DNA of 64,000 nt, from positions 692,203 through 756,202 of the forward strand of contig RHPI01000260.1 of NCBI GenBank assembly GCA_009103225.1, in the 5' to 3' direction. This stretch comes from Chlorokybus atmophyticus. Lineage: Eukaryota; Plantae; Mesostigma and Chlorokybus algae. A program made the position numbers and the translations under genes. Position 1 is the first letter of the stretch; the number at the start of each line of letters is the position of its first letter. The notes below the pieces were generated by a model. That model saw only the letters and a program-made list of their open reading frames with translations. It ran no database searches and had not been told where the DNA came from. Shown here in pieces: positions 42,620-64,000 of the stretch.

Positions 42620-43386
42620 GGCCGCCCACTGCAGCATCGCATATCGCTGACATAGAAGCAAACTTCACCCGGCTGAAATACCATGTGCTTGGTTGACCTT
42701 TTTGCGCAGCTGTGCGGCAAGATGTCCGAGCTGTAGATTATTGTTCAGGGCTATAGCAACAGATTGGCCGTAATTGACGCCCATTGACGAGCCAGTAAGC
42801 TAAGCTGGAGCGTCAAGATTGAGGGCTCAGCCGGCTGCTTGCGTTCCACAACCGTCATGCCATCTACGCTTTGCTGGATAGGTCCCGAGAGTAGCTATTT
42901 GGCGGCGACATCCCTGACGACTTGCGAGGTCCAAAATAGAACGTATACCTCTCGCAACTTGACGAGGCAGCATACGGCAAGCTTGGTGTGACGCTACGTG
43001 CGGCAATTGCCAGCAGGTATGGTCCGGGCATGGGACAGCCATTGCCTGCAGCAGCGGCATATGACTTTAACGTGGACTACATTGCTGCCGCCACTGAGGA
43101 TGCACCACGAAAGGAGCAAGAGAGTTACAAAATATTGTAACGCTTTATTGCCAGCCTGGAAGAAGAACTAGGGTTGGTGTTACGGTTGTAAACGTTAATG
43201 TGCAATATGTTTAAGTTTGTGCTATTAAAGTAGTGTAGTTTTCTAGCCAATACTTCGATGGCCAGTGCAAGCTGCAGAGCACAACGACGGTACACTCTCG
43301 TCTCCCCAACATCGTGGTGGTTGCGGACATTGTGGGGTTACGTTTGCAGGCGTTGGCGACATGCATATGCTATGGAAGAAAGCATG
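42620..43386 (+). pseudogene. Decayed intron-containing ORF of unknown identity, interrupted by the chromovirus (continues at 52591-52669)
   Basis: One frame runs ~42620-43172 with about 8 internal stops (...GLSRLLAFHNRHAIYALLDRSRE*LFGGDIPDDLRGPK*NVYLSQLDEAAYGKLGVTLRAAIASRYG...FIASLEEELG). A phase-consistent GT-AG intron (43173-43246) joins QYFDGQCKLQ..., and the frame stays open across the reconstructed empty GCATG site. Confidence 0.35.
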
Positions 43387-43913
43387 TGTAACAGCACCAC
43401 CGTCGCCGGTGATGCCCCTTCAATCCTCTACCCCAACACCCACACCGCCTATAACAAGCCTTTCAACGGCGTGGCCGCCACTGAGCAGAGAACTGAAAGT
43501 CCCCACATCAGATTGATGTGACCTTTTATATCAAGAGTATATCAACTATATACCTCTCGATAATTAACTCACAACTAGATATCGACCCTACAGATAGGGT
43601 AGTTAGAAAATCTAGCGTGAGCCAATCACAGCTCAGATAAGGTACATATCGATAAGGTACCTACCCAAAAGATACCTATCGTAAGGTACCTAACGAGATA
43701 GTGATCACATTATATCAAATGTGACACTAAATAGGCTTGAATAAGCGGTTCTACACCCATTGGGACTTATTTAACCTATGATAAAGCATTATAGCCTTTA
43801 ATAAGCGAGGAACCGTAGAAAAGAGGTATAAATAAGCATATTTAAATACTTATTCATACAAAATGTGTTATTTAGGTAGCAATAACACCCCTATTATTAT
43901 TGCTCCCGTTACA
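43387..43913 (-). repeat. LTR1 (3' LTR), 527 bp
   Basis: TGTAACA...GTTACA borders, adjoined on the minus strand by the PPT. Confidence 0.95.
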
Positions 43914-43927
43914 TTCCCCCCCACTTA
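43914..43927 (-). promoter_or_regulatory. Polypurine tract TAAGTGGGGGGGAA
   Basis: Directly precedes the 3' LTR on the minus strand. Confidence 0.9.
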
Positions 43928-44101
43928 GGTTTTTAACGTCCTCGTTGAACTCAAGTTGATCAGGCTTGATTACGAGTAATTCAATTACTCGAAATCAAGG
44001 CTGATCAACTTGACTTCAAGTTGTAACCAGTGAGATAGCAGGAAATGACAGGATGGTAATGAAACTGCACTGCCAGTCTGTCATAAAACCAAGCCCACAG
44101 T

Positions 44102-47100
44102 TTATGGGACAGGACATGAATCCCAATAAGCTCGAAGCAACTCGCGGCAGTGCGTAAGATGCCTGTCGGGCTCCCAACTATTATGTTCCGGGCCATACCC
44201 TTTCCATTTCACCAAATAGCGAGTTGCGCGTCCTCGACTATTTAGCTTATGGTTCAATATAGCTTCCACCTCGTATTCGAGCTCGCTGTCCACCTCAACT
44301 GGCGGTGGTGGAGGCTGTGTTCTACCGTCTGAGCGGTAAGGTTTCAACATGTTCACATGGAACACGTTGTGTATACGCACACTTGGGGACAATTGCAGTC
44401 GATAAGCGTGCGTACCAACTCTATCAGTGATAGAGAATGGACCTAACCATCGGGGCAGCAACTTGCGAGCACCCGTACCTTTGATGGTTATGTTCTTTGC
44501 GTTAAGCAAAACTTTATCGCCGACATTGAAAGTGGCCATTTTTCGATGTGTATCAGCATAAGCTTTTTGCCTGTCCTGTGCTTCTGACAGACACAGCTTG
44601 GCTTGAGCCAAATTTTCTTGCATATCAGTGGCAAATTCCTTTGCCGCTGGTACAGTCAGGGCATTGCGAGGCACACGCAATGACGCTGGTGTGTTTGGGC
44701 GAATCCCATAAATCAAGAAAAATGGGGTTTCCTTTACACTTTCCTGCCACGCGTTGTTCACAGCGAACTCTGCCATTGGCAAGTACCTGTCCCAATCAGT
44801 ATGATTAGGAGCCACATAATGGCGAAGCATTTCTTCCAGTATTTGATTTGCTCGCTCAGTTTGACCGTCCGTTTGCGGTGGAAAGCAGTCGACATGCTTT
44901 GTTTTACCCCCAACAATTCACAGACTTCTCGCCAAAACTTGGAGACAAACCGAGGATCACGATCTGTGACAAGTTCACGCGGTACACCGTGAACGCGAAA
45001 GACCGTGGACACAAATAAGTGTGCCAAGTCCCGTGCACTTACAGTTGTGCAACACGGGGCAAAGTGCACCATTTTAGTCAAACGGTCGACAAAAACCACA
45101 ATAGCAGTGTTTTTAGCTGCTGTTTCAGGTAGGTCAGTATACAAATCCATACTGACACTATCCCACCCTTGTCTTGGAATTGCCAATGGTTTAAGCAATC
45201 CCGCTTGTTTTTGTCGTAGTGGCTTATTACGTTGACACACGTCACATGTGCGAACATATTGATCCACGTCAGCTGACATTGACGGCCACCAGTATAACTG
45301 TTGCGCAGATTTGAGTGTTTTGTGTTTCCCCAAATGCCCAGCATACGGCGGGTCATGCACTGAATGTAAGCATTGCTTACGCAAGTCGCCCGAGTTGGGA
45401 ATTGCCATCTGCTCCCCTACATACCACAGATTGCTAACAGCAGTAAGCTGTTGCAAGTTGGTTTGACTGCTAAACCAATCATCTGAGTTATAACCTGCGG
45501 ACACTTTAAGAAAGGATCTTCAGGCTGTTGTACATTACGCGTACTTCAAGAGCGCGTAAGTGCCAAAAGAGCAGGGCTGCGACTTAATGGATCCGCCACA
45601 TTGGTGCGACCCGGACGGTATTGCCAAGTGAAAGTAAAACGAGAAATGAATTCATTCCACCTAGCTTGCCGCCTCGACAGATTTTGTTGCGTATGAAAGA
45701 ATGTGAGCGGGTTGTGATCAGTAATCACTGAAAACTCCACCCCTTCCAAGTAGCAACGCCATGTGCGCAGCGCGTGCACCACCCCGAGCAATTCCTGCTC
45801 AGTGGTTGTGTAATTACGTTCAGCAGGAATGAACTTTCTGCTTTTATATGCACATGGTCTGTTATCCTGTAGAAGGACTGCCCCACACCCAATGGTGGAA
45901 GCATCACTGATCACCACAAAAGGCTTGGTGTGGTCGGGGAAGGCTAACACAGGGGCTTGCGTTAATGCATCTTTAATGCGTGTAAAAGCAACCTCGTGTG
46001 CCTCCGTCCACACAAATTTAACATCTTTTCTTAGTAAAGATGTTAAAGGATTTGCCATGCCAGAATATGCTCGCATGAACTTGCGGAAATAATTGGCTAG
46101 CCCCAAGAAAGCACGTAACTGATGTCACATCCTTGAGTGGTGGCCAATCCTTTACCGCACACACCTTTTGAGGATCTGGTTTCAATCCTTCTTTACCAAT
46201 CACATGCCCTAAAAAGGGTAGTTCATCCTTTGCAAAGTTGCATTGGGACAGGTTGGCATAGAATTTGTGTTCGCGTAATTTAGATAGAACCATTTCCACA
46301 TGTTTGTGGTGGTCCTCCCGGGTTTTGCTGAACACAATAATGTCGTCTAGATATACCAGTACAAACTTGTACAATTGATCAAATACCGTGTTCATTGCTG
46401 TCTGAAATGTAGCCGGTGCATTTGTTAACCCAAATGGTAACACTTTATACTCAAAGTGTCCTAGTGGGGTGCGAAATGCAGTTTTTTGTACATCCGACGG
46501 GTGGATTTTGATTTGATGATAACCACTGGTCAAATCCAGCGTGCTGAACACTGTTGCACCTGACAGCTTATCAAACAAATCATCAATCCGAGGCAAAGGG
46601 TATCTGTTTTTCACAGTGACCTTGTTCAACGCACGGTAATCAATACACATGCGTAGCTTGCCATCCTTTTTGGGCACAAACAAAATTGGTGCACCAAAAG
46701 GAGATATGCTCTTTGTTATTAAACCTTTGTTCAATAACTCTTTGAGCTGTTTTTCCATGTCCGCGTGTTCTAAGGGACTTAGCCTGTATATAGGCCGCCA
46801 AGGTGGCTTTGCCCCATCCTCTAACGGAATGGTATGATGTATGTTTCGATCGGGAGGCAACTCTGGGAGTTCATCCTGAAATACATCTGCGTATTGTTCC
46901 GTAAGTGACTGCACCACAGGGTCACTGATAGCCTGTTCAGCAGGTGTTTCCACATGTCGTAAGTGCAGTAAGTATACTTCCTCACGTTTATGCATGCAAC
47001 GTTGTAATTGCATAGCAGAGAGGAGCGGAACATTATCGCGTGGTATACGTGCGAGTACAGATGCTATTAAAGTCATCCTACGTTTCCCTTTACGAAGGGT

Positions 47101-47823
47101 GCACGTATTGGCTCGAGAGTCTATTTGTAAACCTGCTTCAGTGTGCCATTGTTCCCCTAAAACAACATCCACCCCGGGGATACCAATATCCACCACGATG
47201 AAGGCTGGTCGGGTTATATGGCCATTAATAACAAAACGCCCTTTTACCTCTCCCATTGCATTGAGAGTGGAACCAGCAGCACGTACATATGACGTGACTG
47301 GTGTGAAAGGAATGTTATTACGTTTCACCCAAGCATGTTCAACAAAGTTATGGTTTGCACCAGTATCAATCAATGCTGTACATGGTGTACCCATAAGTTG
47401 ACTCTCAAATCTCCATTTGAGTGGCACTGAGTGACCATCAAATGTAGCTAATGTCGGAGTGCCGTAATTGGTAGCAGACTTGATAAAGATCACTTGCAAC
47501 GGTGAAGCTCCTGTATCTTTGCGTGAGAGTTGCATGATTACTTCCCCCCCTTTCAACAATCGCGACCACGGGCCATGATATTGAGGGATAACTACACATG
47601 CAGTGACAGCATGTTGTAAATGCAACTCGTGTAAGTGCTTAACAGCAGTTACTAATTCAGAGAATGGAACATTAAACATAACACAACCGTTTGCATTTCT
47701 CAACACAGGTGGTGTGCTCATATCAGTCCATACATCTGATACATCACAAAGAGAGGAAACTTTATCAAGAAGTACAGAGTTTTTAAAGTCGTTCTGCTCG
47801 ACTAAGCTACCAACCACGGACAA
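44102..47823 (-). pseudogene. pol: Chromovirus pol (PR-RT-RNase H-integrase-chromodomain), broken by three small indels
   Basis: Protease ALIDTGA; RT KKDGKLRMCIDYRALN, FSTLDLTSGYHQI, VYLDD; RNase H SDASTIGCGAVL, EQELLGVV, TDHNPL; integrase HDPPYAGH..C..C, SVSMD, GPF motif; group I chromodomain EYEVEAIL...YLVKWKGYGPEHNSWEP. Relative to the inverted copy there is a +1 (~46124), a -4 (~45505) and a -1 (~44875) indel. Confidence 0.93.
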
Positions 47824-47826
47824 TTC

Positions 47827-49000
47827 CTATTTCTTGTCTCTCTGCTGCTTAGCCTTCTGTGCATTCTGTTTTGCATGGCACTTAGCCTCCCCATGACCTG
47901 TCTTCTTGCAGAAACTGCAAGTGATGATGGATTTGGCCGCATTGTAGGGGCCAGCAGGATGAGATGGTTTCGCCTTTTTCACAAAAGGTTTGTTGCCAGT
48001 GGCCGGGCGCTTTGCAGCTGAAACCGGGGCTGCCTCTTTTGCCGTGGTTTGCATGTTGGCGTGAGAGCGCTTTACACTGTCCACAGCAGCAACCATCTGC
48101 ATCAGCATTGGTAAATCCGTCGAGGCCCACTCTTGCAAACGCGCGGTTGACGGCCACATGCTGCACGAGATCTGTGTCCAAGCCACGCCTGAACATACCC
48201 AGCTGATCAGCATCACTGATAGGTAGTTTGCCAGCATTGATCTTGCTGACAAACGACTGAAAATCCTGGGTATACTGCTGGACCGGACGCCCGTTTTGAC
48301 GCAGGTTGTGCAACTGGTTGCGAGCAACCTGGGCAGGATCTGCGCCACCATAGCGCTGCTCCATGAAAAAGCACAACTGATCTACTTCCCGCCCGAGGTT
48401 TGTATCCCGTTGCTTACGGCGGTACCACTCTGCCAAAGCATCGTTTGGGATCAGCACCTCAGCTACACGCAATTTCCCCTCCTCAGAAATGTGAAGGGAG
48501 TTGACATAGTGTCGCAACTTCACAAGCCAGTCGAAGATGGCCGCTTGCTTGTTGGGAACAAACTCGGCAGGACGAGCAAGTGCTTGAACAGGTGGACCAC
48601 CGTCAGCACGTTGAAGACGCTCGATCATATTCAGAACACGTTTGCCTTCACCCATCTGCCCCTCCCAATCTCGCCCCATAAAGGTGGTGAGCTTTGAAAC
48701 TTTTTCTGCCAAAAGGAAGAGAAAGTTCACGAATGAGACAATCGCCTCACGAGGGTCCTGATCATAAGTGCTAAGGAAATGCTCCATCAAGTCCTGCTGT
48801 GTCATGCGAATGGAAAACTCAGGGAATATAGAAGGTGATCTATCATCCATTGAAGCTTCCGCAGCTTTGGCAGCTTGAGACTCATCAGGTGCATCATCCG
48901 GATTCGGAATATCTTCCATGGATGGAAATTCCTCCTCACGGGAAGGTTGCTCTTTTTCCGAGCTCTCCTCTTTTGAGGTGGGCACCGAGTTTTCTTCCAT
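47827..49000 (-). pseudogene. gag: Chromovirus gag with one frameshift (~48150) and a C-terminal CCHC knuckle
   Basis: Retrotrans_gag-like segment ARNQLHNLRQNGRPVQQYTQDF...FRRGL; zinc knuckle CSFCKKTGHGEAKC in the second frame; ends at TAG 47827-47829. Confidence 0.85.
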
Positions 49001-49893
49001 TTGTTTGCAAAACAGGCAGAATGGGACGGTGAGAACCTCACCAATAGACCAGGTTCAACGAGAGGATCAAAATGACCCCAAGTTGTAAAAGTCCCAAACA
49101 AAGTCCAAACCAGTCCCAAAATAGGAAAGGTTGGATCTGAAGTGTCATTAAACAGAACAACTTTGAGTGGGACCAGAATGTCCTAACCCTGTGTTGTCCT
49201 CAACCAAGTCCCAATCTCCAGGCCGAAGCCAGAGGGGGAGGGTTTCAGGGTTTGGGAACAGATTGTCCTGGAACCTCCCCACAACTGTCCTAACCAAGTC
49301 CCGATCTCCAGGCCGAAGCCAGAGGGGGAGGGTTTGGGAACAGTTTGGTTTGGAACTTACGGATCCGGGTCAAACGACCCGCCAAGCCGCTGGCAGGTCA
49401 CAGGTACGTCACAGGCATGCAACAGGCAAGCCGTACGGTGACTAACTATGACATGCACAAGCAAGCACAATGACAAGCACTCACCGCATGCAATGACAGG
49501 CAATCACTGCAAGCAATGATAGTGCACTAAGTGTGACAAACAGTGCTGACACACTAGCAAGCCGCAAACACCGCATGCAATGACAGGCAATCACTGCAAG
49601 CAATGATAGTGCACTGGCATGCCACTGTGTGATGTGCTTGAAAGTACACACGTGCACCTGGCAAGCACCTGGCAAGCAGCTGATAAGCAGGCAAGCAGGC
49701 AAGTCACCGACGTGTGTGATGGTACCTCACACGTGGAGAGGCCGCCTCTTTGATAGGTGGCTTCAACGTGGAGGTAGCGCAGGGAAGCGAACTTGAAGCT
49801 TGGGCTGCGTGGACGAATAGGAGGCCGCCGCCGACGCCTTCTGATTGGCCGAAAGCAGGTCGCCGCCCCCTATAAGTACCCACGTCACCCCCC

Positions 49894-49909
49894 AGCTCCT
49901 GGATACCAA
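49894..49909 (-). promoter_or_regulatory. Primer-binding-site-like sequence TTGGTATCCAGGAGCT
   Basis: Immediately follows LTR2 on the minus strand; begins TGGTATC like the tRNA-iMet PBS (TGGTATCAGAGC) but is not an exact match. Confidence 0.7.
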
Positions 49910-50447
49910 TGTAACAGCACCACCATCGCCGGTGATGCCCCTTCAATCCTCTACCCCAACACCCACACCGCCTATGACAAGCCTTTCAACGGCGTGGCCG
50001 CCACTGAGCAGAGAACTGAAAGTCCCCACATCAGATTGATGTGACCTTTTATATCAAGAGTATATCAACTATATACCACTCGATAATTAACTCACAACTA
50101 GATATCGATTTCCTAACTACAGATAGGGTAGTTAGGAAATCTAGCGTGAGCCAATCACAGCTCAGATAAGGTACATATCGATAAGGTACCCATCCAAAAG
50201 ATACATATCGTAAGGTATCTAACGAGATAGTGATCACATTATATCAAATGTGACATTAAATAGGCTTGAATAAGCGGTTCTACACCCATTGGGACTTATT
50301 TAAGCTATGATAAAGCATCATAGCCTTCAATAAGCGAGGAACCGTAGAAAAGAGGTATAAATAAGCATATTTAAACTATATACTTATTCATACAAAATGT
50401 GTTATTTAGGTAGCAATAATACCCCTATCATTATTGCTCCCGTTACA
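49910..50447 (-). repeat. LTR2 (middle LTR), 538 bp
   Basis: Same sequence as LTR1 and LTR3 but with two private insertions (+6 and +5 bp). Confidence 0.95.
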
Positions 50448-50453
50448 TTCTCA

Positions 50454-52058
50454 GTACTGGTATATCTAGACGACATTATTGTGTTCAGCAAAACCCGGGA
50501 GGACCACCACAAACATGTGGAAATGGGTCTAGCTAAATTACGCGAATACAAATTCTATGCCAACCTGTCCAAATGCAACTTTGCAAAGGATGAACTACCC
50601 TTTTTAGGGCATGTGATTGGCAAAGAAGGATTGAAATCAGATCCTCAAAAAGTGTGTGCGGTAAAGGATTGGCCACCACCCAAGGATGTACATCAGTTAC
50701 GTGCTTTCTTGGGGCTAGCCAATTATTTCCGCAAGTTCATGCGAGCATATTCTGGCATGGCACATCCTTTAACATCTTTACTAAGAAAAGATGTTAAATT
50801 TGTGTGGACGGAGGCACACGAGGTTGCTTTTACACGCATTAAAGATGCATTAACGCAAGCCCCTGTGTTAGCCTTCCCCGACCACACCAAGCCTTTTGTG
50901 GTGATCAGTGATGCTTCCACCATTGGGTGTGGGGCAGTCCTTCTACATGATGACAGACCATGTGCATATAAAAGCAGAAAGTTCATTCCTGCTGAACGTA
51001 ATTACACAACCACTGAGCAGGAATTGCTCGAGGTGGTGCACGCGCTGCGCACATGGCGTTGCTACTTGGAAGGGGTGGAGTTTTCAGTGATTACTGATCA
51101 CAACCCGCTCACATTCTTTCATACGCAACAAAATCTGTCGAGGCGGCAAGCTAGGTGGAATGAATTCATTTCTCGTTTCACTTTCACTTGGCAATACCGT
51201 CCGGGTCGCACCAATGTGGTGGATCCACTAAGTCGCAGCCCTGCTCTTTTGACACTTACGCGCTCTCGAAGTACGCGTATTGTACAACAGCCTGAAGATC
51301 CTTTCTTAAAGGAAGTGTCCGCAGGTTATAACTCAGATGATTGGTTTAGCAGTCAAACCAACTTGCAACAGCTTACTGCTGTTAGCAATCTGTGGTATAA
51401 AGGGGAGCAGTTGGCAATTCCCAACTCGGGCGACTTGCGTAAGCAATGCTTACATTTAGTGCATGACCCGCCGTATGCTGGGCATTTGGGGAAACACAAA
51501 ACACTCAAATCTGCGCAAAAGTTATACTGGTGGCCGTCAATGTCAGCTGACGTGGATCAATATGTTCGCACATGTGACGTGTGTCAACGTAATAAGCCAC
51601 TACGAAAAAAACAAGCGGGATTGCTGAAACCATTGGCAATTCCAGAACAAAAGTGGGATAGTGTCAGTATGGATTTGATTACTGACCTACCTGAAACAGC
51701 AGCTAAAAACACTGCTATTGTGGTTTTTGTCGACCGTTTGACTAAAATGGTGCACTTTGCCCCGTGTTGCACAACTGTAAGTGCACCGGACTTGGCACAC
51801 TTATTTGTGTCCACGGTCTTTCGCGTTCACGGTGTACCGCGTGAACTTGTCACAGATCGTGATCCTCGGGTTGTCTCCAAGTTTTGGCGAAAAGTCTGTG
51901 AATTGTTGGGGGTAAAACAAAGCATGTCGACTGCTTTCCACCCGCAACCGGACGGTCAAATTGAGCGAGCAAATCAAATACTGGAAGAAATGCTTCGCCA
52001 TTATGTGGCTCCTAATCATGCTGATTGGGACAGGTCCTTGCCAATGGCAGAGTTCGCT
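50454..52058 (+). mobile_element. Inverted 1.6-kb pol fragment (RT from VLVYLDD through RNase H to the integrase core), uninterrupted reading frame
   Basis: Reverse complement of 44762-46362 with scattered substitutions; lies in the 598-aa ORF 50397-52193, whose ends are LTR-derived. Confidence 0.93.
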
Positions 52059-52063
52059 CCGAA

Positions 52064-52590
52064 TGTAACAGCACCACCGTCGCCGGTGATGCCCCTTCAA
52101 TCCTCTACCCCAACACCCACACCGCCTATGACAAGCCTTTCAACAACGTGGCCGCCACTGAGCAGAGAACTGAAAGTCCCCACATCAGATTGATGTGACC
52201 TTTTATATCAAGAGTATATCAACTATATACCTCTCGATAATCAACTCACAACTAGATATCGACCCTACAGATAGGGTAGTTAGGAAATCTAGCGTGAGCC
52301 AATCATAGCTCAGATAAGGTACATATCGATAAGGTACCTATCCAAAAGATACCTATCGTAAGGTACCAAGCGAGATAGTGATCACAATATATCAAATGTG
52401 ACACTAAATAGGCTTGAATAAGCGGTTCTACACCCATTGGGACTTATTTAAGCTATGATAAAGCATCATAGCCCTTAATAAGCGAGGAACCGTAGAAAAG
52501 AGGTATAAATAAGCATATTTAAATACTTATTCATGCAAAATGTGTTATTTAAGTAGCAATAATACCCCTATTATTATTGCTCCCGTTACA
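52064..52590 (-). repeat. LTR3 (outer 5' LTR), 527 bp
   Basis: Same length and indel state as LTR1; followed by TSD GCATG. Confidence 0.95.
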
Positions 52591-52946
52591 GCATGTGAAC
52601 TCCATGAGGCGTGTAGCAAGATCCGGGGGAACATTTTTTGCAAATGGCTTGGGCGCTTCAAAGTTATAAAAACGGGCCTAGGATAGGCTAAAAACAGCTG
52701 TTATTGCGATATGCACAAGACTTTATTTCGAATGCACATTAAACTCATTATAACTACTCAGCTAATTCCTACATGAAGACATGATGATAGTTACGATACT
52801 TGCAACTTTTTTAAGATACATGAAGCGACATCCACGGTAGCACATTAAACACGGAAAAATATGATTCAACATCCACTACAGAAACTTGCATTACCTAGTA
52901 AACAATCTACACTGCCAAACAAATGTACAACCCTAGCTAACTTACT

Positions 52947-55900
52947 TTACAACACCTCAAGGATGGCCTCATGCAGCTCCCGTATGCGAAACAACGACTC
53001 CCTTATACCTTTCCATGTCTTCAGCCTGGACTTACTGCGGGTAAGTCGTTCACTCTTGGACTCCCGCTCCAATGTGACCTTGGGTGCGCACCGTAGTAAG
53101 TAAGCTGGTACTCTTGCCTTTTTGTGGGGTTGAGGCGGTAGGAATTACAAAGACCGTTTTGGCAACTCTTAAACCGGGACATGTTGTTGTGTGAGTCGCC
53201 GAAAATATACTCCTGTAATGTAGAGGGTGTTCGGCAGCACCCTGTTGCCGTAGCTGTCCGCACGGGTTGTGGATTGACGATTTCTTTCTGCCTCCTTCAC
53301 ACTTTGAAGGATCCAATAAGGTGCATCTTTGTCGTGATCTTCAGCGCTCCTGTAAAAAGATACAACGAAGAGATCCCTCTTCTTCAAGGTTAATGCCAGC
53401 GTCTCTTAGTTTAGCATTAGCATCTAAAAGATAGCAAGCACTCAGATTACGAAAACTGCAGTACCCTGCTTGCATCGGCACACATTGCAAGATGCTGGAC
53501 GTCCATTAACTTGCAACAAGCAAAGCAGGATCCTGAACCTTCATTAACTTGCATGTTCAGCACTGGCTCACAAGACATTCAGCTGCATGTGCCAAATGTT
53601 CAGTTACTGCACTTTTAAATTTGAGAAATGCTTACCTCTTGCTCAGCCTCTTCCTCTTCATCTCCAGCCACGAGCACCTGCTGCTTCCACTTGCCCGCAT
53701 TCTCCTTGTTGACGCAGCTAGAATGCAGCTCCTCGACACATGGTGCACAGAAGCAAGAAAGCGCACGGGACATGAAGCGGTCCGCTTCACCCGTCGCTCG
53801 CACGGCCTGGAACTTCATAGTGCCTGGCACTGTCCCGTAATTGCTTCGTTCCGGTTTATGCACAACCTCGTCAATGTCCGAAAGGTGAAACAAGTGCTTC
53901 TGCACACACGCCTCGCCTTTTCGAGATTCATACGTGGATAAAGCTCCTCGGCCCAGGTGCTCATTGGCGTAACGTGCTGCGGACTCAACATTTACTATCT
54001 GTTCTCCCTGCAGCACTGCCCTGTCGAGAAGGTGCTTTGATGTTCCTCCCTAGCCGTCGTGTTCTCCTTTACCATGCTGAGGGCAAGGATAATGCCACTC
54101 TAGCTTTATATGACAATAAGTCGCAGGGTCGTCCTCGCATTCAACAGCCGATGCAGAGGTCGCAAGAACAGGCACTCCAAACTTTGCTATCTGTCCAAAT
54201 TGTTTGCGCACTTAAATTGTACGCTGCAGTTATCACTCCAACTGACGATTTTGTGTACAGCAATGTCCCTGCGCAGATACCCCCCCAGGAGTCCTCTGAT
54301 GTAATGATGCACCACTTAGCTGTCTTTGATGGTGTCATGCGTTATGAAGAAGTGCACCTGCGTAAAACACGGCTGAGTTAAACCTGGTCAGCAGGCAAGT
54401 CAGCTATGATAGGTGTATTAATGTAACACATGCTGCTTTACCTCTTTCATGCGCACAGGCTCCTCGTCTGTAGACTCGATGCCATCGACCTCAATTTGCG
54501 CATGACAATGCACTATCATGACATAGATCACTACAGGTGCAGATTGAAAGTGCTGCTGCATCAGCTCGTTCTTCGGTCGAATGGTATAGTTCTCCGCAAA
54601 ATCACTGATCATGACAATGGTGCCGCGATTGAACGTCTGTAAGCACTGTCGTTGCTGTAAAGCTTGCCACGAACCCAGAAACGCGTGCCAGCGAAAGTCC
54701 TCCAGCATAGGTCGGTATCGCACGCGGAATACCGAGTAAGTAAGCGTCTGCTTGGCAAAGTCCACGCGTTCGTACTCTGTGACGGAACCATTGCAGCGCG
54801 CCTTGTCTGCTTTTGCTTTTCATAAAGGGACGGACATAGCCGCGTAGTGACGTCTTGCATAATCTGTATGACAGTTTGAAAAGAGCTTGTCCCAACCACA
54901 ACGACTGCATTCTCCTTTCACACAGCGCTTTTTATGGTAACCTTCACCGGGTTCCTTTGGGCACATGATAGAGTTGACAGCGTCTGTTAAATGGCTAAAA
55001 AAACCTTTGCAAGCTAATTGTAACGGGAAGGTACATCAGATCACCACAAATCGACCGTAAAAGTATCAAGTCTTTTGTGGTCGAGTGGGCTCTGACATTG
55101 GTCATCGGAGCTTGAGACCCGAGTTCGATTCCTGCCTTGCACACGAATTGCGTGGTCGTTGTTTCTTGATCCAATAACATCATAAATGGTCAGTTTATAA
55201 TCATCGATGGGTCATCGATAGGTCGCGACTTGCCTAATGGCAATCGCGCCGAACTGACCAGTTCAATCGGCGCGGCAGGGCGCGACCATCCTATCGCGGC
55301 GACGCGACCTGTGGGGCCGGCAGCGGCTCGCTATGCGCGCGTTGACCGGTATGGCCTAAACTGGCCGGTCCTTGGGTGGTGGGGCCGGTGACGGACCCTA
55401 AGATGATTCCCCTGGGATGATTCCCCAGCTGATGCGAGCCAGCTGCCGGGGACGTCAGCGTTCTTAAGTGGGGGGGAATGTAACGGGAAGGTACATTAAA
55501 TCACCACAAATCGACCATAAAAGCACCAAGTCTTTTGTGGTCGAGTGGGTTGTGACACCAATAGACACCTGCTGTACATTGAATGATCACAAGGACTGCT
55601 GCAGGCGCAAGTCTTCTGAACCTGTTAAACAATATGTCAGCAGGCAACCGGCTTGTAAGATCTTGGAGGTCGAGTAACTGCTAGCTTGCTTACCTCACAG
55701 TAATTACAAGCACAATGACAACTATCAATATGCCGCAGGCGCAGAAAATTGGTAAGGGCGTCCCACATTTCCTTGTTTTCTGTGTGTGCTGAACAAACGC
55801 ATACATGCCGAACGTCTCGTGCTCCAATATAGTGGGGTTTCAGCTTTTTAATGACCGCTGCTGTACTTGAACTTCCGGGTGCTGCTCTTTGAACATCAAA

Positions 55901-56485
55901 AACAGCTCTGTGCGCGTGGTGCCTTCCGGATATTTTTTGGAGATTTTGATATTGCGCAGCCTCTTGTTAGTGACTTCATCTCGAGCGTGAACTTGATCGC
56001 GTTTGGATGCAGACTCTCTTGTGTTCTTATGCCAAAATTGTTGAATCAAATCGGCCACACGCAAGCTGTCTTTGCATTTGCCACGCTGCTTCAGGCTCCA
56101 GTCATTCCGAATGGATGTCAACTGTTAGGACCAGTGACGTTTGATTTTGAGAAGTGCAGCAACGTTCTGCGTGACACGTGCATCGTTCAAGACTTTCAGC
56201 AACACACTGCTACCGGTTTTAACGAGCACGGCTCGTGCATAACGATGAGCTTCTATTCTTGCTGGCTTGACTTCTTGATAAGCTTTGCTATTCATTTTTG
56301 CAACGGTGCGAAGGGCTGGGGCATCGGCAACAGCCTAAAGGTCTTCATCGTGTTGGATGGCAGCTTGCAGAAACGGTTGCTTAGTTAAAAGATCTTTAAA
56401 TACCAATGATAATGTCGCGGTTGAATTGCCACAGATTCTAACAATGTTCTGGGCTAAGCCGCTTGATATACGACCAACAGTCCAC
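52947..56485 (-). pseudogene. Intron-containing DDD-type DNA transposase pseudogene, tentatively Sola superfamily; 5' end unresolved
   Basis: ELFLMFKEQHPE..KLKP, Cys-rich CVCSAH and MCPK...HKKRCVKGECSRCG, FRWHAFLGSWQ, catalytic-like SDFAENY (54586-54603), WSDNCSVQFK (54208-54240), HGKGEHDG (54054-54076), then TVPGTMKF...LSCFCAPC...C and PYWILQ...DSYGN...YITGVYF. Several in-frame stops and frameshifts; GT-AG introns. Superfamily assignment is from motif memory only. Confidence 0.75.
55019..55557 (+). mobile_element. TRIM (miniature non-autonomous LTR retrotransposon), 539 bp, 79-bp LTRs
   Basis: TG...CA LTRs at 55019-55097 and 55479-55557, PBS-like TTGGTCATCGGAGCT, PPT TAAGTGGGGGGGAA, TSD CTAAT/CCAAT (one transition). 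Removing it plus one TSD restores the transposase frame (YSRCLL|ACKGFFSHLTDAVNSIMCPK). Confidence 0.9.
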
Positions 56486-56530
56486 CTGAAGGCAAGAGAC
56501 TGAAGTGAGTTCTCTTAGGGCTTACGATGG

Positions 56531-56922
56531 TGAGATTGTAGAGGTCTATTATAACACAACGATAAAGTTAGTAGACCTCTAAGGTCTCAGGCACCGAGGA
56601 ATGAGCGAAGTTGTCAACCTGAGATCTTGGAGGTCTAGTAACACACAACGAGTGAGGTGAATGGACCTCCAAGATCTCAGGCATCGAGGGATTGACGACC
56701 TGAGATCTTGAAGGTCTAGTAACACACAACGAGTGAGGTGAATGGACCTCCAAAATTTCAGGCATCAAGGGATTTACGACCTAAGATTTTGAAGGTCCAG
56801 TAACACACAACGAGTAAAGCTAATAGACCTTCAAGATTTTGGGCATCGAGGGATAGACGATCTGAAATCTTGAAGGTTCCGAAACGCACAACGACTGAAG
56901 TTAATAGACCTCCAAGATCTCA
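56531..56922. repeat. Array 1: five ~81-bp units, each containing an inverted pair of CCTGAGATCTTGGAGGTC / GACCTCCAAGATCTCAGG
   Basis: Unit starts at 56531, 56620, 56701, 56782, 56863; the spacers are themselves repeated. Confidence 0.9.
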
Positions 56923-57873
56923 TGTATGCTGCCTGACAAGCAATGGACCAAGAATGCTAGTAACACAGTCTTGCAGATTGGGAACTTTAACACCTCAGGC
57001 TGAAGGGCTTTGGGTGCGGTCGTGACAATACTATTTGAGTACAAAAGCAATTGCAAGAACTACACAGCAATGAGGTTGCAACATCTGTGTATATGTGTAC
57101 GTGTGTGCTCTTATATGCGGATGTTGCATGACTAATGATGGGTGTGTGCCAGTACATGCCAACTGCGTATTTACCAAGAGGCAGCTCCCCTGCTGCAGTA
57201 CTTCGTGCTTACCATGCAGGGAACAATCACATAAGCAACATGGGTGTGTGTGCAAATGTCTCTGCTTGCTGCAACTTGCTGTGTGCATGCAGCTCTATAT
57301 GTTGCGCTTTTTGGTTTTGCTGATTACCAGCACAGGATTTACTGCAGCAACTAGCATATGGTGTGCATTATAGTAATAGCAATCTTTAACTGTCAAACAG
57401 TGCATACAAGACTATAACGCACGAATATTGTACTTGCTAGGTGGCGCCATGTATGCTGCCGCTGATCAAACCCTCCTGCATGAGCGCTGGGACAGCGCAA
57501 CCCTTGTCGCAAATTTTCATATCCTCAGCGTTTTGCGCTAAAACTAGCTTACAGACGTCCTAACGGTCAAGTAGAGCAGCAAGCTTCAACTCACCTGGCT
57601 CGCGCTCGCCACCCCATATGGCCCCCACATCGCCTCCCATACCACCGCCCAAAGCCAGCACTCACTTACCAGCTACCGCACCAGGTCTTTCAACTTGCAA
57701 GTTACAACTTGCAAGCATTAGCTACACTCTACACAGTGGGATCTATTGAAACACACTAGCGCCCAGCTGAAAACAACACCGCCGCCGCCGCCAACAACTA
57801 CACGACCGCCGCCGACGACCAGCTGCACTGCGGCACTAGAGTGGAGCTCACCGAATTGGGGGGGGGGGGGGGG

Positions 57874-57921
57874 NNNNNNNNNNNNNNNNNNNNNNNNNNN
57901 NNNNNNNNNNNNNNNNNNNNN
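57874..57921. other. Assembly gap inside a poly-G tract
   Basis: N run flanked by G homopolymers on both sides. Confidence 0.99.
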
Positions 57922-58840
57922 GGGGGGGGGGGGGGGGGGGGGGGGGTAGGGTTCGACGCGCGATTAATGTCGCAACTAGGAAGCATAGTTTTCCATTGAT
58001 CTAAATTGTTATATCTATACGCGATCGTCGATATATCCAACGGACGACGACGTTTGTTTTTTGGATTGCTCGCTCTCGCCCCAGTGCTTGCGCTGCATAA
58101 GAGTATAACCGGTACAGATACTTATATGTGCGCTATTTAGAGTAGCATGTTGCGTGTTTTGGTTTTATAAAATCTACATTGATGGTAGGACGGTAATTAC
58201 ACCGCTCTTAGCGAAGTGGCTTCAATGAAGCCCAGCACACGCACCATGCTAGTTTTTTTTTTCACAAATAAGGAAGTGTTAATTTTCAATCCATGATTGT
58301 TGCGTGTGATTACTGCGTAGATGATGTTATAAGTCTGTCGTGTTATATCAAAATTGGATGAAGTGCATGCTGGTTGCAATGCGTAAGGTGTTACGTAATG
58401 CTTGGCATGTGTACTTGTAACATGCCGTGAGTGATGATCGATGCGTACAATTGATGATACGCGTGTTACGTAATGCTTCTATTGCAATACATAACAAGTT
58501 TTAATAATTACACATATCTACTGTAGAGTTTTATTAAGCAATAGTCTATAGCAGTCTATATTTCAGTGGAATTATATGGAGATAATAGTTGGTTGTAGTT
58601 AATTACAAATAACAATTCAACACCAAGAGTATGACAACAATTATTGTGGCATTAAATGAAGACATCGTTACCTTCAACATTATGATATGACCTTGCATAC
58701 TGTCTTCCGCAAAGGCTGGGTAAAGCGGAGGTTATCGCACCATCAGATAAGACCGAAAACCGACGGTTACCAACGCATCGGCAATCATGTATATAATAAT
58801 CAATTGACATTAGGTAATTCGTGTTTTTCAAGATATGATT

Positions 58841-58927
58841 CCTCTCATACCGCGAGAGCAACTCTGTCGCAGTAGCTCTCACGGTATGAGAGCTACTGCG
58901 ACAGAGTTGCTCTCGCGGTATGAGAGG
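58841..58927. repeat. Perfect 41-bp inverted repeat with a 5-nt loop
   Basis: CCTCTCATACCGCGAGAGCAACTCTGTCGCAGTAGCTCTCA-CGGTA-TGAGAGCTACTGCGACAGAGTTGCTCTCGCGGTATGAGAGG; arms checked base by base. Confidence 0.95.
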
Positions 58928-59357
58928 TGGCGCCCAGCCACTTAGGGTTTCTGGCCTCGGCAGGCATAGCCTCGGCAACCATAGCCAAAAATCCTAATGT
59001 TCAGGGGCGCTTTGGCGGGGGCGGCAGTGGCGTTGGTGGGGGTGTTGGCGGCGGTGGCAGGGGTGGAGGCGGTGTTGAGGCTTCGAGGGGTGTAGGAGTT
59101 TGAGAAGCGGCGCCTCCGTGTGTGAGGACAGGGTTGATTAGGGCGGCGTGGGCGTGGGCGGTAGGGGCCGGTGTAGGGCGTGGGCGTGCGTGCAGCAGCA
59201 TGGAGGGGTCAAAGCGCAAGTCGACCAGGTTTGTGTTGTGTTTTTTAGTAGTGTTTTTGATTGCAATGCTTGCTTGTGACTGCTGCTGCTGTCGCTGCTG
59301 CTGAATATTAATGCTATAGCACCAGCAGCAGCACCAGCAGCACTGTATTCCTTTGTG

Positions 59358-59640
59358 GTTGATTGCTGCGCACATCAACTTGTGTGTGCAGCAATCAACT
59401 GGTTGCTGAATTGTGTGTTGTGTCGCAGTCGCTGTTGTTACTAATTGTAATTGATTACTGCGCACAGCAACTTGTGTGCGCAGCAATCAATTGGTTGCTG
59501 AATTGCTGTGTGTTGTGTCCCAGTTGATATTGTTCGCAACTTAAGCAACTTAACACAGCAATCTAGTAACAGCGCAGCAACTTCAATTCAGCAACCAGTC
59601 GATTGCTGTGCACACAAGTTGCTGTTGTAGTTGATTGCTG
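59358..59640. repeat. Cluster of ~42-bp imperfect hairpin repeats (GTTGATTGCTGCGCACA..TGTGTGCAGCAATCAAC)
   Basis: Two direct copies (59358-59399, 59449-59492) and a partial inverted copy (~59585-59625). Confidence 0.8.
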
Positions 59641-59763
59641 GTACACTGGTACATTGCTAGTAGCTGTACCTTGCTGTTGGCACAGCTACCAGCAACACCT
59701 TGTCGTTAACTGCTATTGCCATTTTAGACAATGGAAAATCTAATTGTGTAAACTGCTATGCAG

Positions 59764-62700
59764 TGCAAATAAGGACACTCTAGAGGGGGAGAAAGCATAG
59801 GAGGACACTACTTCGCTCAGATCGAAGCGTTCACGTCTGCCCCCATCATTCCAGTACGCCTTCTGCTGCTCTTTGTCCTGCTGCTGAGATCTTGGAGTTT
59901 CAAGATCTTGTGGAACAACTGCCTAATCTTGGAGGTCCAAGATTTTGGACCTCTCTTAGCTGCGTGTTCTTAGAGATTAGAGATCTTGAACCCTTCCTTG
60001 ACTTACAGTTAGAGGAGGTTCAAAATCTTGGACCCCCCTTAGCTGCCGGCTCATGGAGGTTCAAGATCGTAAACCTCCCCTAGCTGCCTGTTCTTGGAGG
60101 TTTAAGATCTGAACCTCCCTTTACTCCAAGTTAAGAAAGGTTCAAGATCTTAGACCTTCTTTAGCTGCCTCGAGCTCTTGGAGGTTTACAATTTTAAACC
60201 TCCCTTAGCTTCCTGCTCTTAGAGTTCTTAAATAAAGTACAATTGCTTCGCACGTATGAACTTACTACATTGTGAACTGCAGACAACCCCTGGCAATTGT
60301 TAGCCCTGGTCGGGGACCGCAACAAAAGCTTGCAGGCACGCAACGGAAAAAAAGTGCCACAAAGAAGAAGCAAGACAAGACTCCTCCACAGAAGACACCT
60401 AAAAGTTCAAAAAAAGCTGAACAAGCCGGTTGAGATTTCTTCCAATAATGACAAGCAGGACAGGAAGCAAGTAGACACCAATGACGATCAGCCCAGGGAC
60501 AACAAAGCAAGACCAAGAAGATTCCAGCGTAGCAGTGATGCAGATGAACCCGTCATCTACTCATGTGAGTAACCAAGGGTGTGCAGCAGATGTCTCTTAT
60601 CTGCATTGTATGTGACGTTTACAAGTACGTGACAAGATTGTGTTGACAGATAGCGATTTGCAGTTGCTATGGGCTAAAAAGCAAAATTCAATTAAAGTCA
60701 TCCTCGTACCAAACGTTGCAGTTTTGAAATCAATAGGTGAAGCCGAGCGCCAACATGTTTGAAAGTTGCGGTACATGGGTCAGGGAAATTACCGTCTTAA
60801 TGTTAAACGTAACGTGAGTGTTTAAAAGCGTGGGTTACATGAGTTTCAAGATCCGGCTTAGCTTACCGTGCACAGGGCAACACATCTACATACGCCCTTC
60901 TTAGAGCGTGATGCTCAGATGGAAAGTCCATCTACTGTCTCGGGTTGCCCTACAGCAATATCAACGACGACAATGACGTCATTGTGCGAAAAGCCGAACT
61001 TCTAATCTTGTCCAAAGCAAAGGGTTTATTTCAAGTTAGAAGAAGCTGAGGCAGAGAACGAGCTTGATCTAATGGATCTTGCAGCAAGTGTCCACCGAAG
61101 GGTGCTGAAGCATCTTGTGGATTCAACAGACGACTTGAACGAAAAGTTCTTCGAATGGCTGCGAGGTAGCTTATGGCATACCACATCACTGCCAAGGGCT
61201 TGACAAATTCAATACTCTTGTTATGCTTTGCAGACCTGCCCGATAACAGCGTGTCACCCAGCAAGGGCAAGGCAACCAAGCCTTCCACGTCCACATCAGA
61301 AGATTCAGATAACTCTGATAGTGACAAACCTGCAGGCTACTCACCTGTCATTCAGACCAGTAACAAAAGTGAGCTATTGTATTCGGCTTTAGCCTGCTTG
61401 TTATTACTCTGTGTGCATATCTCAAGGCATTATCACTAAGTGCGTTGCCATAGGATATTCGATAGTCGCTTGCTTGTCTTATGTTTCAGGCCTGCTGGGT
61501 CGGTTGAAGCTGCCCCCTTTGGTTCAAACCTCTGGAGGAAACACCTTGTTCAATGTTCCCGTTGATCGGATGATGCTTGCTCGCCCGGGCCATTCCGTGA
61601 GAACGGTCACCGAGGCTAGGCTGAAGATTGTGGAGGGCGAGATCGACGCTGGCCTGCTTATTTACAATCGGTGGATTGGATTGGTGCTCGAAAAGACTGG
61701 ACCCACAGAATGGCGTCAAGTGCTAGCAGACGAGTTTCTGCATGATCCATCGAGCGCAAGATGGCAGTTCGAGATTTTGTGCGAGAATAACTTGCTTACA
61801 ATATATCAGCGCAAGCATCACAACCATCCAGATGATCCAAAATGGGCGTCTCAAAGGATCGAGGTAGGCTGCTTTATTGTTGTTAAGTTATGGTACCTTC
61901 AGTAACTGACCAACAACTTTATATGTGACAGGTCGTGACCAACATCGATAGACTTCAAATCCTCAACCTGAGTTGTCACTGTCTGCGACGACATGCGAAA
62001 AAGAGGCAGATTTTATGGGTTTATCGCTGCTAAGGCTTTGAATGAAGACTTTGGCAAGCCTGGGTACATCCAACCTAGCCTGCTTACAAAGTTCCAAGTT
62101 CTTAAACCTTTCTTAACACCCAGCTCTTGTAGGGTCAAGATCTTGAACCTCTCTTAGCTGCATGCCATTTGTCTGAACGCAATTGTTATGCTTGCAGCAA
62201 TCAGGATCGTCTTTGCTCAAAGTACCCTGAGCTTTTTGAAAAGCTCGATTTGCTCTTCTCCAGAGCTTAGACGCATGACATGTTCATGAGAGAGCTGATA
62301 GCAGCGAGACCCAAGGTACAGACGAAAGAGTCAGAAAAAGACGTTGAGAAAAAGCCAATAAAGGCGGGCAAGGTGAAAGGGAAAGGCCAGCCCACATATG
62401 TCAAACAACTTGAAGATTTGGAACTTCCCGTTGCCATCCGGAAGGATTTTCAAGAACTCACGGACTCCAAGCTGGTCTACAGCCGCCGAAATTAAAGGCG
62501 CTGTGGAATTTACGCAGCAAGCAATGTCAAAATTATTGTGGCTGGTCTATTGGCGGTGCATTTATGCCACTGTGCTGTGTTGCATGTAGACGCAAGATGT
62601 GGCATTGGAAGAGAAAGCGCCTGCCAGTGATCAGGCAACGTGTCATCCTTCGAATGGACACTGCTCAGCAGTTCCTGGAAGGTCGTTGTCCAAGTCGGAG

Positions 62701-64000
62701 GAACCCCTGCCATTATTCTACACTGTGTTCATGGATATTGAGTTTGTCACGCATCACAGCAGCGTTGAGGATTTTGGCATCACCAACGAGTGCTTTATAG
62801 ACTTATAGACTGAAGGATATCCTGGTCGGCCACAACAAGCCATTGCCTTTTTGGAATATGGTGGTCCTCGTGGACGACGACCATCTTAGCAGCGTGGTGC
62901 AGATACTCATACAGGATGCCTTTGCTGAGGAGACATCCGCTTACCACCACGCCAGCAGCAGTAAGTCGTTGTGTTCTAGGATATGCAAGGTCTAGTAACC
63001 TGATGTAGCAACTGAGGCTGCTGTGTTGTCTTCCGCAGAGCAATTGGCTTTCCCACGTACTTTGCATCTCGGGCAAGCAACAACCATGTGGTGGTTACCT
63101 TGCCGTTTCAAGGACAAAGACAATAATGTTGGGTTGCACCACGCAAACCTTGAGCGCTTTTATCAGAGCGTGTGGACCCGAATGGGCGGTGTCGGTAGCC
63201 GGCATATTTATGCTTTGCCACGCAAGTTGAGCCTTCCCAGCTATTACGACGATCAACCTACTATTCCGCAATTGAGAGAAAACCTGCCTCTCCTCCAGAT
63301 CTGAAGAGCAGGGTTGATGCCAGGATGGCGCTGATCAAGGTTGATGAGGGTCGAGATCTGCTAGAGATTCTGCTCGACGCCAGGGCAGTAGCTGACCGCA
63401 GAAATGCTTTGCTCACTAACGTAATGCGGAGTTGTTGGACCGCTCAAATGGCGAAGTTCCAAAGTAAGATGGTCAACCAAGCTCAGCGATTCTCTCGGAA
63501 GTTTGCTCTCGACTATTTGCCTTATCGCAAGGACACCAGTGAGATGTTCTTCTTGGACCTTGGTGTTGGTGCTGCGGGCTTTGCAACGTATGCCCTAAAG
63601 CAAGGGTACAGCGGATTTCTTGTAGACCCTGACCACCTGCATCCACGCTTTGAGTGTGTATTGCGGAAAGTTTAGCAAAGCCTACGAGGAGCTGGTAAGC
63701 AGAGTGTGCACTTTGAGTTAATGGACCTCTCATATTTCAGCTCTCTGGCTGACCACTTTGCTTGCGTAGGAGAAGCACAACTACGGACTGGATAGCGAGT
63801 ACAGGGCACTTACAGGAGAACCCGCAGTGACGCCTGTGCCGCTTCCACGAGTCAAGACGCATGCGGCCATTGCCAAGGACATTGTGCGTGAAATGTTCAC
63901 AGGGTTCAACCACAACTCCGCTCGGCACCTTGCGATGCTGGGTCAGTGGCTGACCAAGGACAATGCTGCGCAAGAAGCTGGGGGTGACGATAAGTTCAAG
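59764..64000 (+). pseudogene. Decayed multi-exon gene with ParB/Srx-like and beta-class amino-methyltransferase-like segments; runs off the window
   Basis: Phase-consistent exons (e.g. 61234-61368, 61490-61863, 61932-62063, 62198 onward). ParB-like FNVPVDRMMLARPGHSVRTVTEARLKIVEGEI...QFEILCENNLL; motif-IV-like FYTVFMDIEF (~62716-62745); motif-I-like FLDLGVGAAGFATYALKQGYSGFLVDPD (~63550-63633). Multiple TAG stops and frameshifts. Domain calls are remote pattern matches. Confidence 0.5.
59884..60225. repeat. Array 2: about eight ~41-bp units, each a 24-bp palindrome (consensus GGAGGTTCAAGATCTTGAACCTCC) plus linker CTTAGCTGCCTGTTCTT
   Basis: Palindromes at ~59894, 59931, 59972, 60014, 60055, 60096, 60136 and 60180. 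Confidence 0.9.

Follow-up and report, generated by a model that had tools for sequence, protein, structure and literature searches.

The stretch analyzed here, which we refer to as the window, comprises 64,000 nucleotides of the Chlorokybus atmophyticus genome (assembly GCA_009103225.1, contig RHPI01000260.1, positions 692,203 to 756,202 of the forward strand), and transposable elements are abundant across the last 11 kb of it. This part holds a decayed transposase gene on the minus strand, arranged head to head with a many-exon accessory gene on the plus strand, and an array of palindromic repeats toward the 5' side of each gene. We consider it likely that the sequence from about 52.9 kb to the window end represents a single, dead copy of a Chlorokybus cut-and-paste transposon of the Sola2 type, approximately 12 kb long. 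As a specimen the copy is poor, since it is dead and is cut by the window end.

Two divergent pseudogenes and their palindromes

The features that carry this reading are the following:

52950-56334, minus strand: transposase pseudogene, Sola2-like and broken into at least 10 open pieces, assembled from open-frame pieces
54589-54603, minus strand: first catalytic motif, DFAEN, unique in the six-frame translation of the window; Sola2_DFa-2 and Sola2_PPa-1 have DFKEN
54208-54240, minus strand: second catalytic motif, WSDN....FKC, in open piece 54315-54190; published Sola2 have WSDG...FKS or WCDN...FKS
54056-54076, minus strand: third catalytic motif, HGKGEHD, unique in the six-frame translation of the window; published Sola2 have HGKSDVD or HGKSECD
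56528-56935, no strand: array 1, five hairpin units (89, 81, 81, 81 and 76 bp), from Tandem Repeats Finder (TRF), repeat search and unit alignment
59200-59228, plus strand: possible first exon of the second gene (with ATG), followed by a first intron of about 1 kb that holds array 2, read from the sequence
59884-60222, no strand: array 2, with eight units that each join a 24-bp palindrome to a spacer (about 41 bp per unit), from TRF, repeat search, and palindrome and profile search
60283-64000, plus strand: second ("cargo") gene with at least 10 exons, decayed and running past the window end, from open segments with GT..AG borders
61490-61863, plus strand: longest intact exon of the second gene, candidate ParB-like part by pattern-level resemblance only
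63550-63627, plus strand: S-adenosylmethionine (SAM)-binding motif I (FLDLGVGAAG) with a motif II-like FLVD 12 residues later, from pattern search

At motif level, the transposase holds as Sola2-like. Its three catalytic (DDD) motifs are collinear and stand in the same order as in published Sola2 transposases, they match those of Sola2_DFa-2 and Sola2_PPa-1, and they differ from the motifs of the Ectocarpus Sola1. The comparison was made by eye against the proteins in Additional file 3 of Bao and Jurka (2013) and is not a scored alignment. The second motif has one residue more than its published Sola2 counterparts, and a strict pattern search missed it. An initial annotation of this DNA had described the gene as a DDD transposase of Sola type, and the motifs agree with that description. 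Pfam was blank for the ten minus-strand pieces of the gene, which is expected because the Sola catalytic domains are without a Pfam model (PMC5751038). A word search with a transposase piece returned 0 matches, under length limits that leave out full-length kin, and a metagenome scan with a transposase piece was blank. In the ESM Atlas, the transposase piece found only unnamed eukaryotic fragment clusters (0.96), and the nearest named family, DUF7869 at 0.81, is a lead only.

Both genes are decayed by stops and frameshifts. The transposase contains at least 6 in-frame stops, one frameshift between pieces 54315-54190 and 54211-54053, and a small long terminal repeat (LTR) element of the TRIM type, which the copy took in later. 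The second gene contains at least 5 stops and at least 5 frameshifts, so that the earlier description of the two genes as divergent and similarly decayed stands. The segment at 59200-59228 is only a putative first exon, and the frame from it into the next exon is broken in this copy. The motif I pattern at 63550 is the sole match in the six frames of the window, and it is followed by an acidic residue at the usual distance. Motif I together with an acidic residue at the end of strand 2 is common to all class I methyltransferases and is by itself no indicator of a DNA enzyme.

The two arrays differ in unit length and have the core AGATCTTGGAGGTY in common. For array 1, TRF reported an 81-bp repeat at 56617-56922 (3.8 copies, 84% matches) that the repeat search widened to about 56531-56927; the first unit is degenerate and begins at about 56528. 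The best of the units folds as DNA with -23.6 kcal/mol (z -7.55), and the motif cores alternate in orientation with a spacing of 42 or 39 bp. For array 2, TRF reported a 41-bp repeat at 60014-60218, widened by the repeat search to about 59887-60241, in which each 41-bp unit is made up of a 24-bp palindrome centred on AGATCT and a 17-bp spacer. The motif of the element is thus an AGATCT core flanked by GGAGGT/ACCTCC, and in both arrays the cores recur every 39-43 bp, i.e., about every four helical turns. Array 1 lies upstream of the transposase, and array 2 in the putative first intron of the second gene. In array 1, positions 56568-56768 on the minus strand also hold a 66-codon open frame with a 27-residue repeat; such a frame arises because 81 is divisible by 3, and it probably reflects the repeat structure rather than a gene.

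The motif is concentrated in the element. With up to 2 mismatches, the core AGATCTTGGAGGTY has 15 matches in the window against 0.46 expected, 14 of them within 55658-60186, and the 24-bp palindrome is matched 3 times in the window when up to 3 mismatches are allowed, against 0 expected. When nhmmer profiles of both repeat units were run over the whole window, all matches below E 4.5 fell within 53488-63741 and none in the other 53 kb. These results bear out what had been noted from the sequence at the outset, namely that one sequence block is shared by arrays near both genes and that the host-gene part of the window has no comparable arrays of it. A metagenome scan with the 24-bp palindrome was blank. 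The mutation spectrum of the array units is unremarkable in its share of transitions (34/49 and 27/49), and therefore makes no case for methylation-driven decay.

Outside the arrays, single or partial copies of the motif are found along both genes:

53489-53551, no strand: solo copies in the last transposase intron (nhmmer E 0.026-0.7; direct-repeat family)
55655-55679, no strand: single arm of array 1, in the short interval that separates open pieces of the transposase (exact 14-mer; nhmmer E 0.016)
60834-60853, no strand: half of an array-2 unit in intron 60814-60875 (nhmmer and intron borders)
62079-62159, no strand: two array-2 units in intron 62064-62197 (nhmmer E 1e-7; repeat families; palindrome search)
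62963-63003, no strand: array-1 left arm in intron 62961-63038 (17/20 bases match; nhmmer support weak)
63714-63741, no strand: array-1 right arm in intron 63695-63769 (20/24 bases match; nhmmer E 0.11)

The solo copies first noted at 55657-55671, about 60841-60853 and 62131-62152 were recovered by the repeat, core and nhmmer searches. In the second gene, four of the five solo matches with nhmmer E < 0.5 fall in predicted introns, which make up about 21% of the stretch (chance ~0.01); the further intronic arm at 62963-63003 rests mainly on its match of 17/20 bases. The solo copies of the transposase likewise fall between open pieces. This near confinement of solo palindromes to the introns of both genes is possibly a new detail, as it is unmentioned in the publications compared below; introns may be the sole free space in so densely coding an element. 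By eye, introns 60565-60649, 61166-61233, 61369-61489 and 61864-61931 also contain array-like short stretches (CAGTAAC...ACAAC, CTTTAGCCTGCTTG), which are below any statistical threshold.

Continuity and extent of the proposed element

The sequence supports the view that the transposase, the second large gene and the palindromes are parts of one element. Copies of both motif types are present in introns of the transposase gene as well as of the second gene, and to either side of the assembly gap that separates the genes, which would place the two genes in one repeat family. The motif types common to both genes, the lack of a further copy of either gene in the remaining 52 kb of the window, and a layout that is as published together argue for a single element. 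Rfam and tRNA scans returned nothing. Further features in or near the element are:

55019-55557, no strand: nested TRIM of 539 bp inside the transposase gene, with 79-nt direct repeats that are 91% identical
57858-57946, no strand: poly-G run holding the assembly gap 57874-57921 (G16, N48, G25, all on one strand), non-coding
58841-58927, no strand: perfect 41-bp inverted repeat with a 5-nt loop, from repeat search (DNA fold -56.6 kcal/mol, z -18.5)
59353-59625, no strand: second palindrome family of about 40 bp in 3 copies, from repeat search (DNA fold z -6.0)

The initial annotation had proposed one large element of more than 11 kb, possibly more than 21 kb. The idea of one element gains support from the shared motif family, from the Sola2 motifs and from the 10-15 kb of published Sola2 elements, and the visible parts are probably compatible with a length of about 12 kb. 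The larger size is not needed: an element of 21 kb would have to include the three-LTR chromovirus at 43388-52591, and this was ruled out, as the chromovirus is flanked by its own perfect 5-bp duplication GCATG (43383-43387 and 52592-52596) and is a separate insertion. It follows from the duplication that the sequence on the two sides of the chromovirus was once continuous. The LTRs of the chromovirus contain tandem arrays of the 15-bp near-palindrome GATAAGGTACCTATC (43636-43696, 50165-50217 and 52313-52367), and the window therefore holds a second transposable element with a palindrome array of its own.

Several observations weigh against the reading of the locus as one Sola2 element with a ParB-type accessory gene. 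Neither element end, with terminal inverted repeat (TIR) and 4-bp duplication, was found in the window. The right end falls past the window limit at 64000, and the left end is ambiguous: since the chromovirus is a separate insertion, it could lie within 52592-52950 or to the left of 43383. The neighbourhood of the two genes crosses the assembly gap, and the arrays are central in the element and not terminal. A Pfam search of 29 pieces (exons or open frames, including those of the transposase) and an NCBIfam search of 10 pieces brought up no relevant family, and a phmmer search of the PDB with four pieces gave chance matches only. The longest intact exon (61489-61863) had 0 phmmer matches among 1.84 billion proteins, and the ESM Atlas returned nothing for this ParB-like exon. 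The ParBc profile and solved ParB structures were blank for the pieces 61489-61863 and 60616-61200. In a pattern alignment by eye, the ParB arginine patch (GERR-type) is not conserved, and CENN stands at that place. Single-sequence AlphaFold models reached a pLDDT of 39.2 for the ParB-like exon and 37.7 for the methyltransferase-like part, too low for a fold search, from which they were left out because they would give meaningless matches. Finally, no (D/N/S)PP(Y/F/W) catalytic motif occurs in the part of the second gene within the window.

The label of the second gene as ParB-like and amino-methyltransferase-like, as first annotated, has thus found no support in profile, sequence or fold searches, and what remains of it is motif I and a loose ParB pattern. 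Profile searches for ParB or methyltransferase similarity had been named from the start as a check that could refute the idea; on the decayed copy they found none, and a decayed gene searched exon by exon, in pieces, is a weak test. If motif I comes first, as in the alpha-class order, the catalytic motif would be placed past 64000. The beta-class order, in which motif IV precedes motif I, is unsupported, with no catalytic motif in the gene within the window.

The assembly gap at 57874-57921 bears on whether the two genes were neighbours in the genome at all. It lies in non-coding spacer, and no reading frame crosses it. The gap, of estimated size, separates the two genes, and blastn of its two flanks showed no extended symmetry or similarity beyond the short motif, which would be in keeping with unrelated neighbours, or pieces of different copies, joined by scaffolding. 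But the gap is bordered left and right by G runs of the same strand, which is what a single long homopolymer would produce, and the borders of the two other gaps in the window are ordinary sequence with no homopolymers. Two unrelated contig ends are unlikely both to end in same-strand G runs, and the simplest reading would therefore be one long poly-G tract. Additionally, within the window the motif family is confined to the two genes and to sequence lying left and right of the gap, and the head-to-head arrangement matches the published layout. We therefore regard it as very improbable that the two genes are unrelated or come from different copies; a join between two copies of the same family could still lie at this gap.

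Just to the right of the gap, about 270 bp upstream of the putative ATG of the second gene, the inverted repeat at 58841-58927 lies within an AT-rich block; that its arms match perfectly points to an origin not long ago or to an artefact of the assembly. The second palindrome family, with arms TTGATTGCTGCGCACA / TGTGCGCAGCAATCAA, is unrelated to the array motif and lies in the same putative first intron as array 2. The TRIM at 55019-55557 is flanked by CTAAT and CCAAT. An exact 24-bp match in opposite orientation links the TRIM interior (55465-55488) with the chromovirus (43904-43927), and may represent a shared primer-binding or polypurine-type signal.

Possible binders of the palindromic sites

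In live copies of a single Sola2-type element, a DNA-binding protein of the element's own would occupy the palindromic sites. The accessory protein would be the leading candidate for this role, as the initial annotation had suggested. Its relatives in other algae have been described as fusions of a DNA binder of ParB type with a DNA methyltransferase, and with such a protein the element could recognise and mark its own DNA. By analogy with these relatives, binding of the sites by the accessory protein is a tentative proposal that we put forward with less than even confidence. The transposase or promoter factors may also be the binders, and we give this only slightly less weight.

The arrays might instead be ordinary cis elements unrelated to the accessory protein, such as internal repeats to which the transposase binds, or enhancer-like repeats that serve a two-way promoter. 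Both arrays lie just upstream or in the 5' leader of two divergent genes, as would be expected of such elements, and a distance of about 41 bp between sites is compatible with any cooperative binder. Near-palindrome arrays are also present in the LTRs of the chromovirus, an unrelated element of the window, and arrays of this kind may be common in the control regions of transposable elements in this genome. However, copies of the motif are also found in introns far from either promoter, and the published authors tie such arrays to the ParB-type gene. We consider the cis-element explanation unlikely on balance, though deserving of some weight. The intronic copies might also be explained if the motif is a small hairpin repeat that colonised introns or gave rise to them, the arrays being tandem amplifications with no dedicated binder. 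The intronic excess in the second gene and the position of the transposase solos between open pieces point in this direction, and the arm ends resemble splice signals (GTAAGATC..., ...ATCTCAG). On the other hand, non-coding sites in a densely coding element can persist in introns only, and the decay of this copy is too advanced for selection on the sites to be judged. An origin as a hairpin repeat therefore appears improbable to us.

With the sites taken to be bound by a protein of the element, their distribution could have a further meaning. The element may distribute its palindromes over the introns of its two genes, in addition to the arrays in the 5' leaders, such that a ParB-type protein of its own would load along the whole transposon while coding is left undisturbed; alternatively, the introns would derive from the hairpin repeat. 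We offer this as speculation to which we give little credence at present.

Comparison with known transposons and ParB-type systems

The characters of Sola2 elements include short TIRs of 12-26 bp and a 4-bp, mostly AT-rich target duplication. The dictyostelid Sola2 elements reported by Bao and Jurka (2013; PMC3627910) are DFa-1/2/3 and PPa-1/4/5, which are 10-15 kb long and carry a second gene that is long and spliced. For Sola2 elements with cargo, TIRs of 12-22 bp and 4-bp duplications have been published. The Chlorokybus element resembles the dictyostelid ones in its motif set (DF.EN, W[SC]D[GN]..FK[SC] and HGK[SG]..D). In contrast, the cargo of dictyostelid Sola2 is Fanzor1 (TnpB-like), and no palindrome arrays are described for them.

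The initial annotation knew of no description of a Sola-type transposase combined with a ParB-like/methyltransferase-like gene and palindrome arrays, but such combinations have been published (PMC12477816; bioRxiv 10.1101/2025.02.11.637652; PMC4738411). The Ectocarpus element Sola1-1_Ec32 is 21.5 kb long with 282-bp TIRs, and the 1104-amino-acid product of its opposite-strand gene combines a ParB-like domain with a DNA methyltransferase domain of the N4C/N6A type; according to the authors' proposal, proteins of this kind bind the transposon that encodes them and modify it (Dinatale et al., 2025; PMC12477816). The Chlorokybus copy is similar in that a large accessory gene lies on the strand opposite the transposase in an element of the Sola group. 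It differs in being Sola2-like with other transposase motifs and probably about 12 kb long, and the ParB and methyltransferase domain calls were not reproduced on it. In the red alga Bostrychia, the Plavaka accessory gene PAG3 is of ParB type with adjacent tandem inverted-repeat arrays, and its protein has likewise been proposed to bind and modify its own transposon (Petroll et al., 2025; bioRxiv 10.1101/2025.02.11.637652). Tandem arrays of inverted repeats beside the accessory gene are common to PAG3 and the Chlorokybus element. Plavaka differs in belonging to another transposase superfamily, and in having ParB fused to a 2-oxoglutarate (2OG) oxygenase with the methylase in a separate gene, PAG2.

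The modification methyltransferase DpnM is of the DpnII type and methylates GATC. A green-algal "chlorophyte-type Dam" clade with a ParB-helix-turn-helix (HTH) fusion has been described, and its bacterial members include DpnM (Iyer, Zhang and Aravind, 2016; PMC4738411), which gives the GATC point a published footing. The GATC target of DpnM fits the GATC core of the palindrome, and the Chlorokybus gene is by analogy a candidate for this clade, with its catalytic half past the window and no profile match.

In bacteria, ParB-parS and KorB-operator systems have short palindromic sites, often several, that are recognised by a ParB-family protein. The Chlorokybus system differs from these in that it is a eukaryotic transposon in which no partner ATPase was seen, and its sites are only candidate binding sites.

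If the published idea is true, elements of this kind carry a self-recognition module, i.e., a DNA binder and a DNA-modifying enzyme aimed at their own palindromes, and a transposon could in this way set the state of its own chromatin. The Chlorokybus element has two features of the giant algal transposons with a ParB-type accessory gene, namely an accessory gene on the strand opposite the transposase, albeit across the assembly gap, and inverted-repeat arrays adjacent to it. The kind of element is known and already published, and the Chlorokybus copy is a new, Sola2-like member of it from a streptophyte alga. A streptophyte-alga Sola2 family with a GATC-centred site, which is simple and testable, would mean that the pattern described in brown and red algae also reaches into the green lineage.

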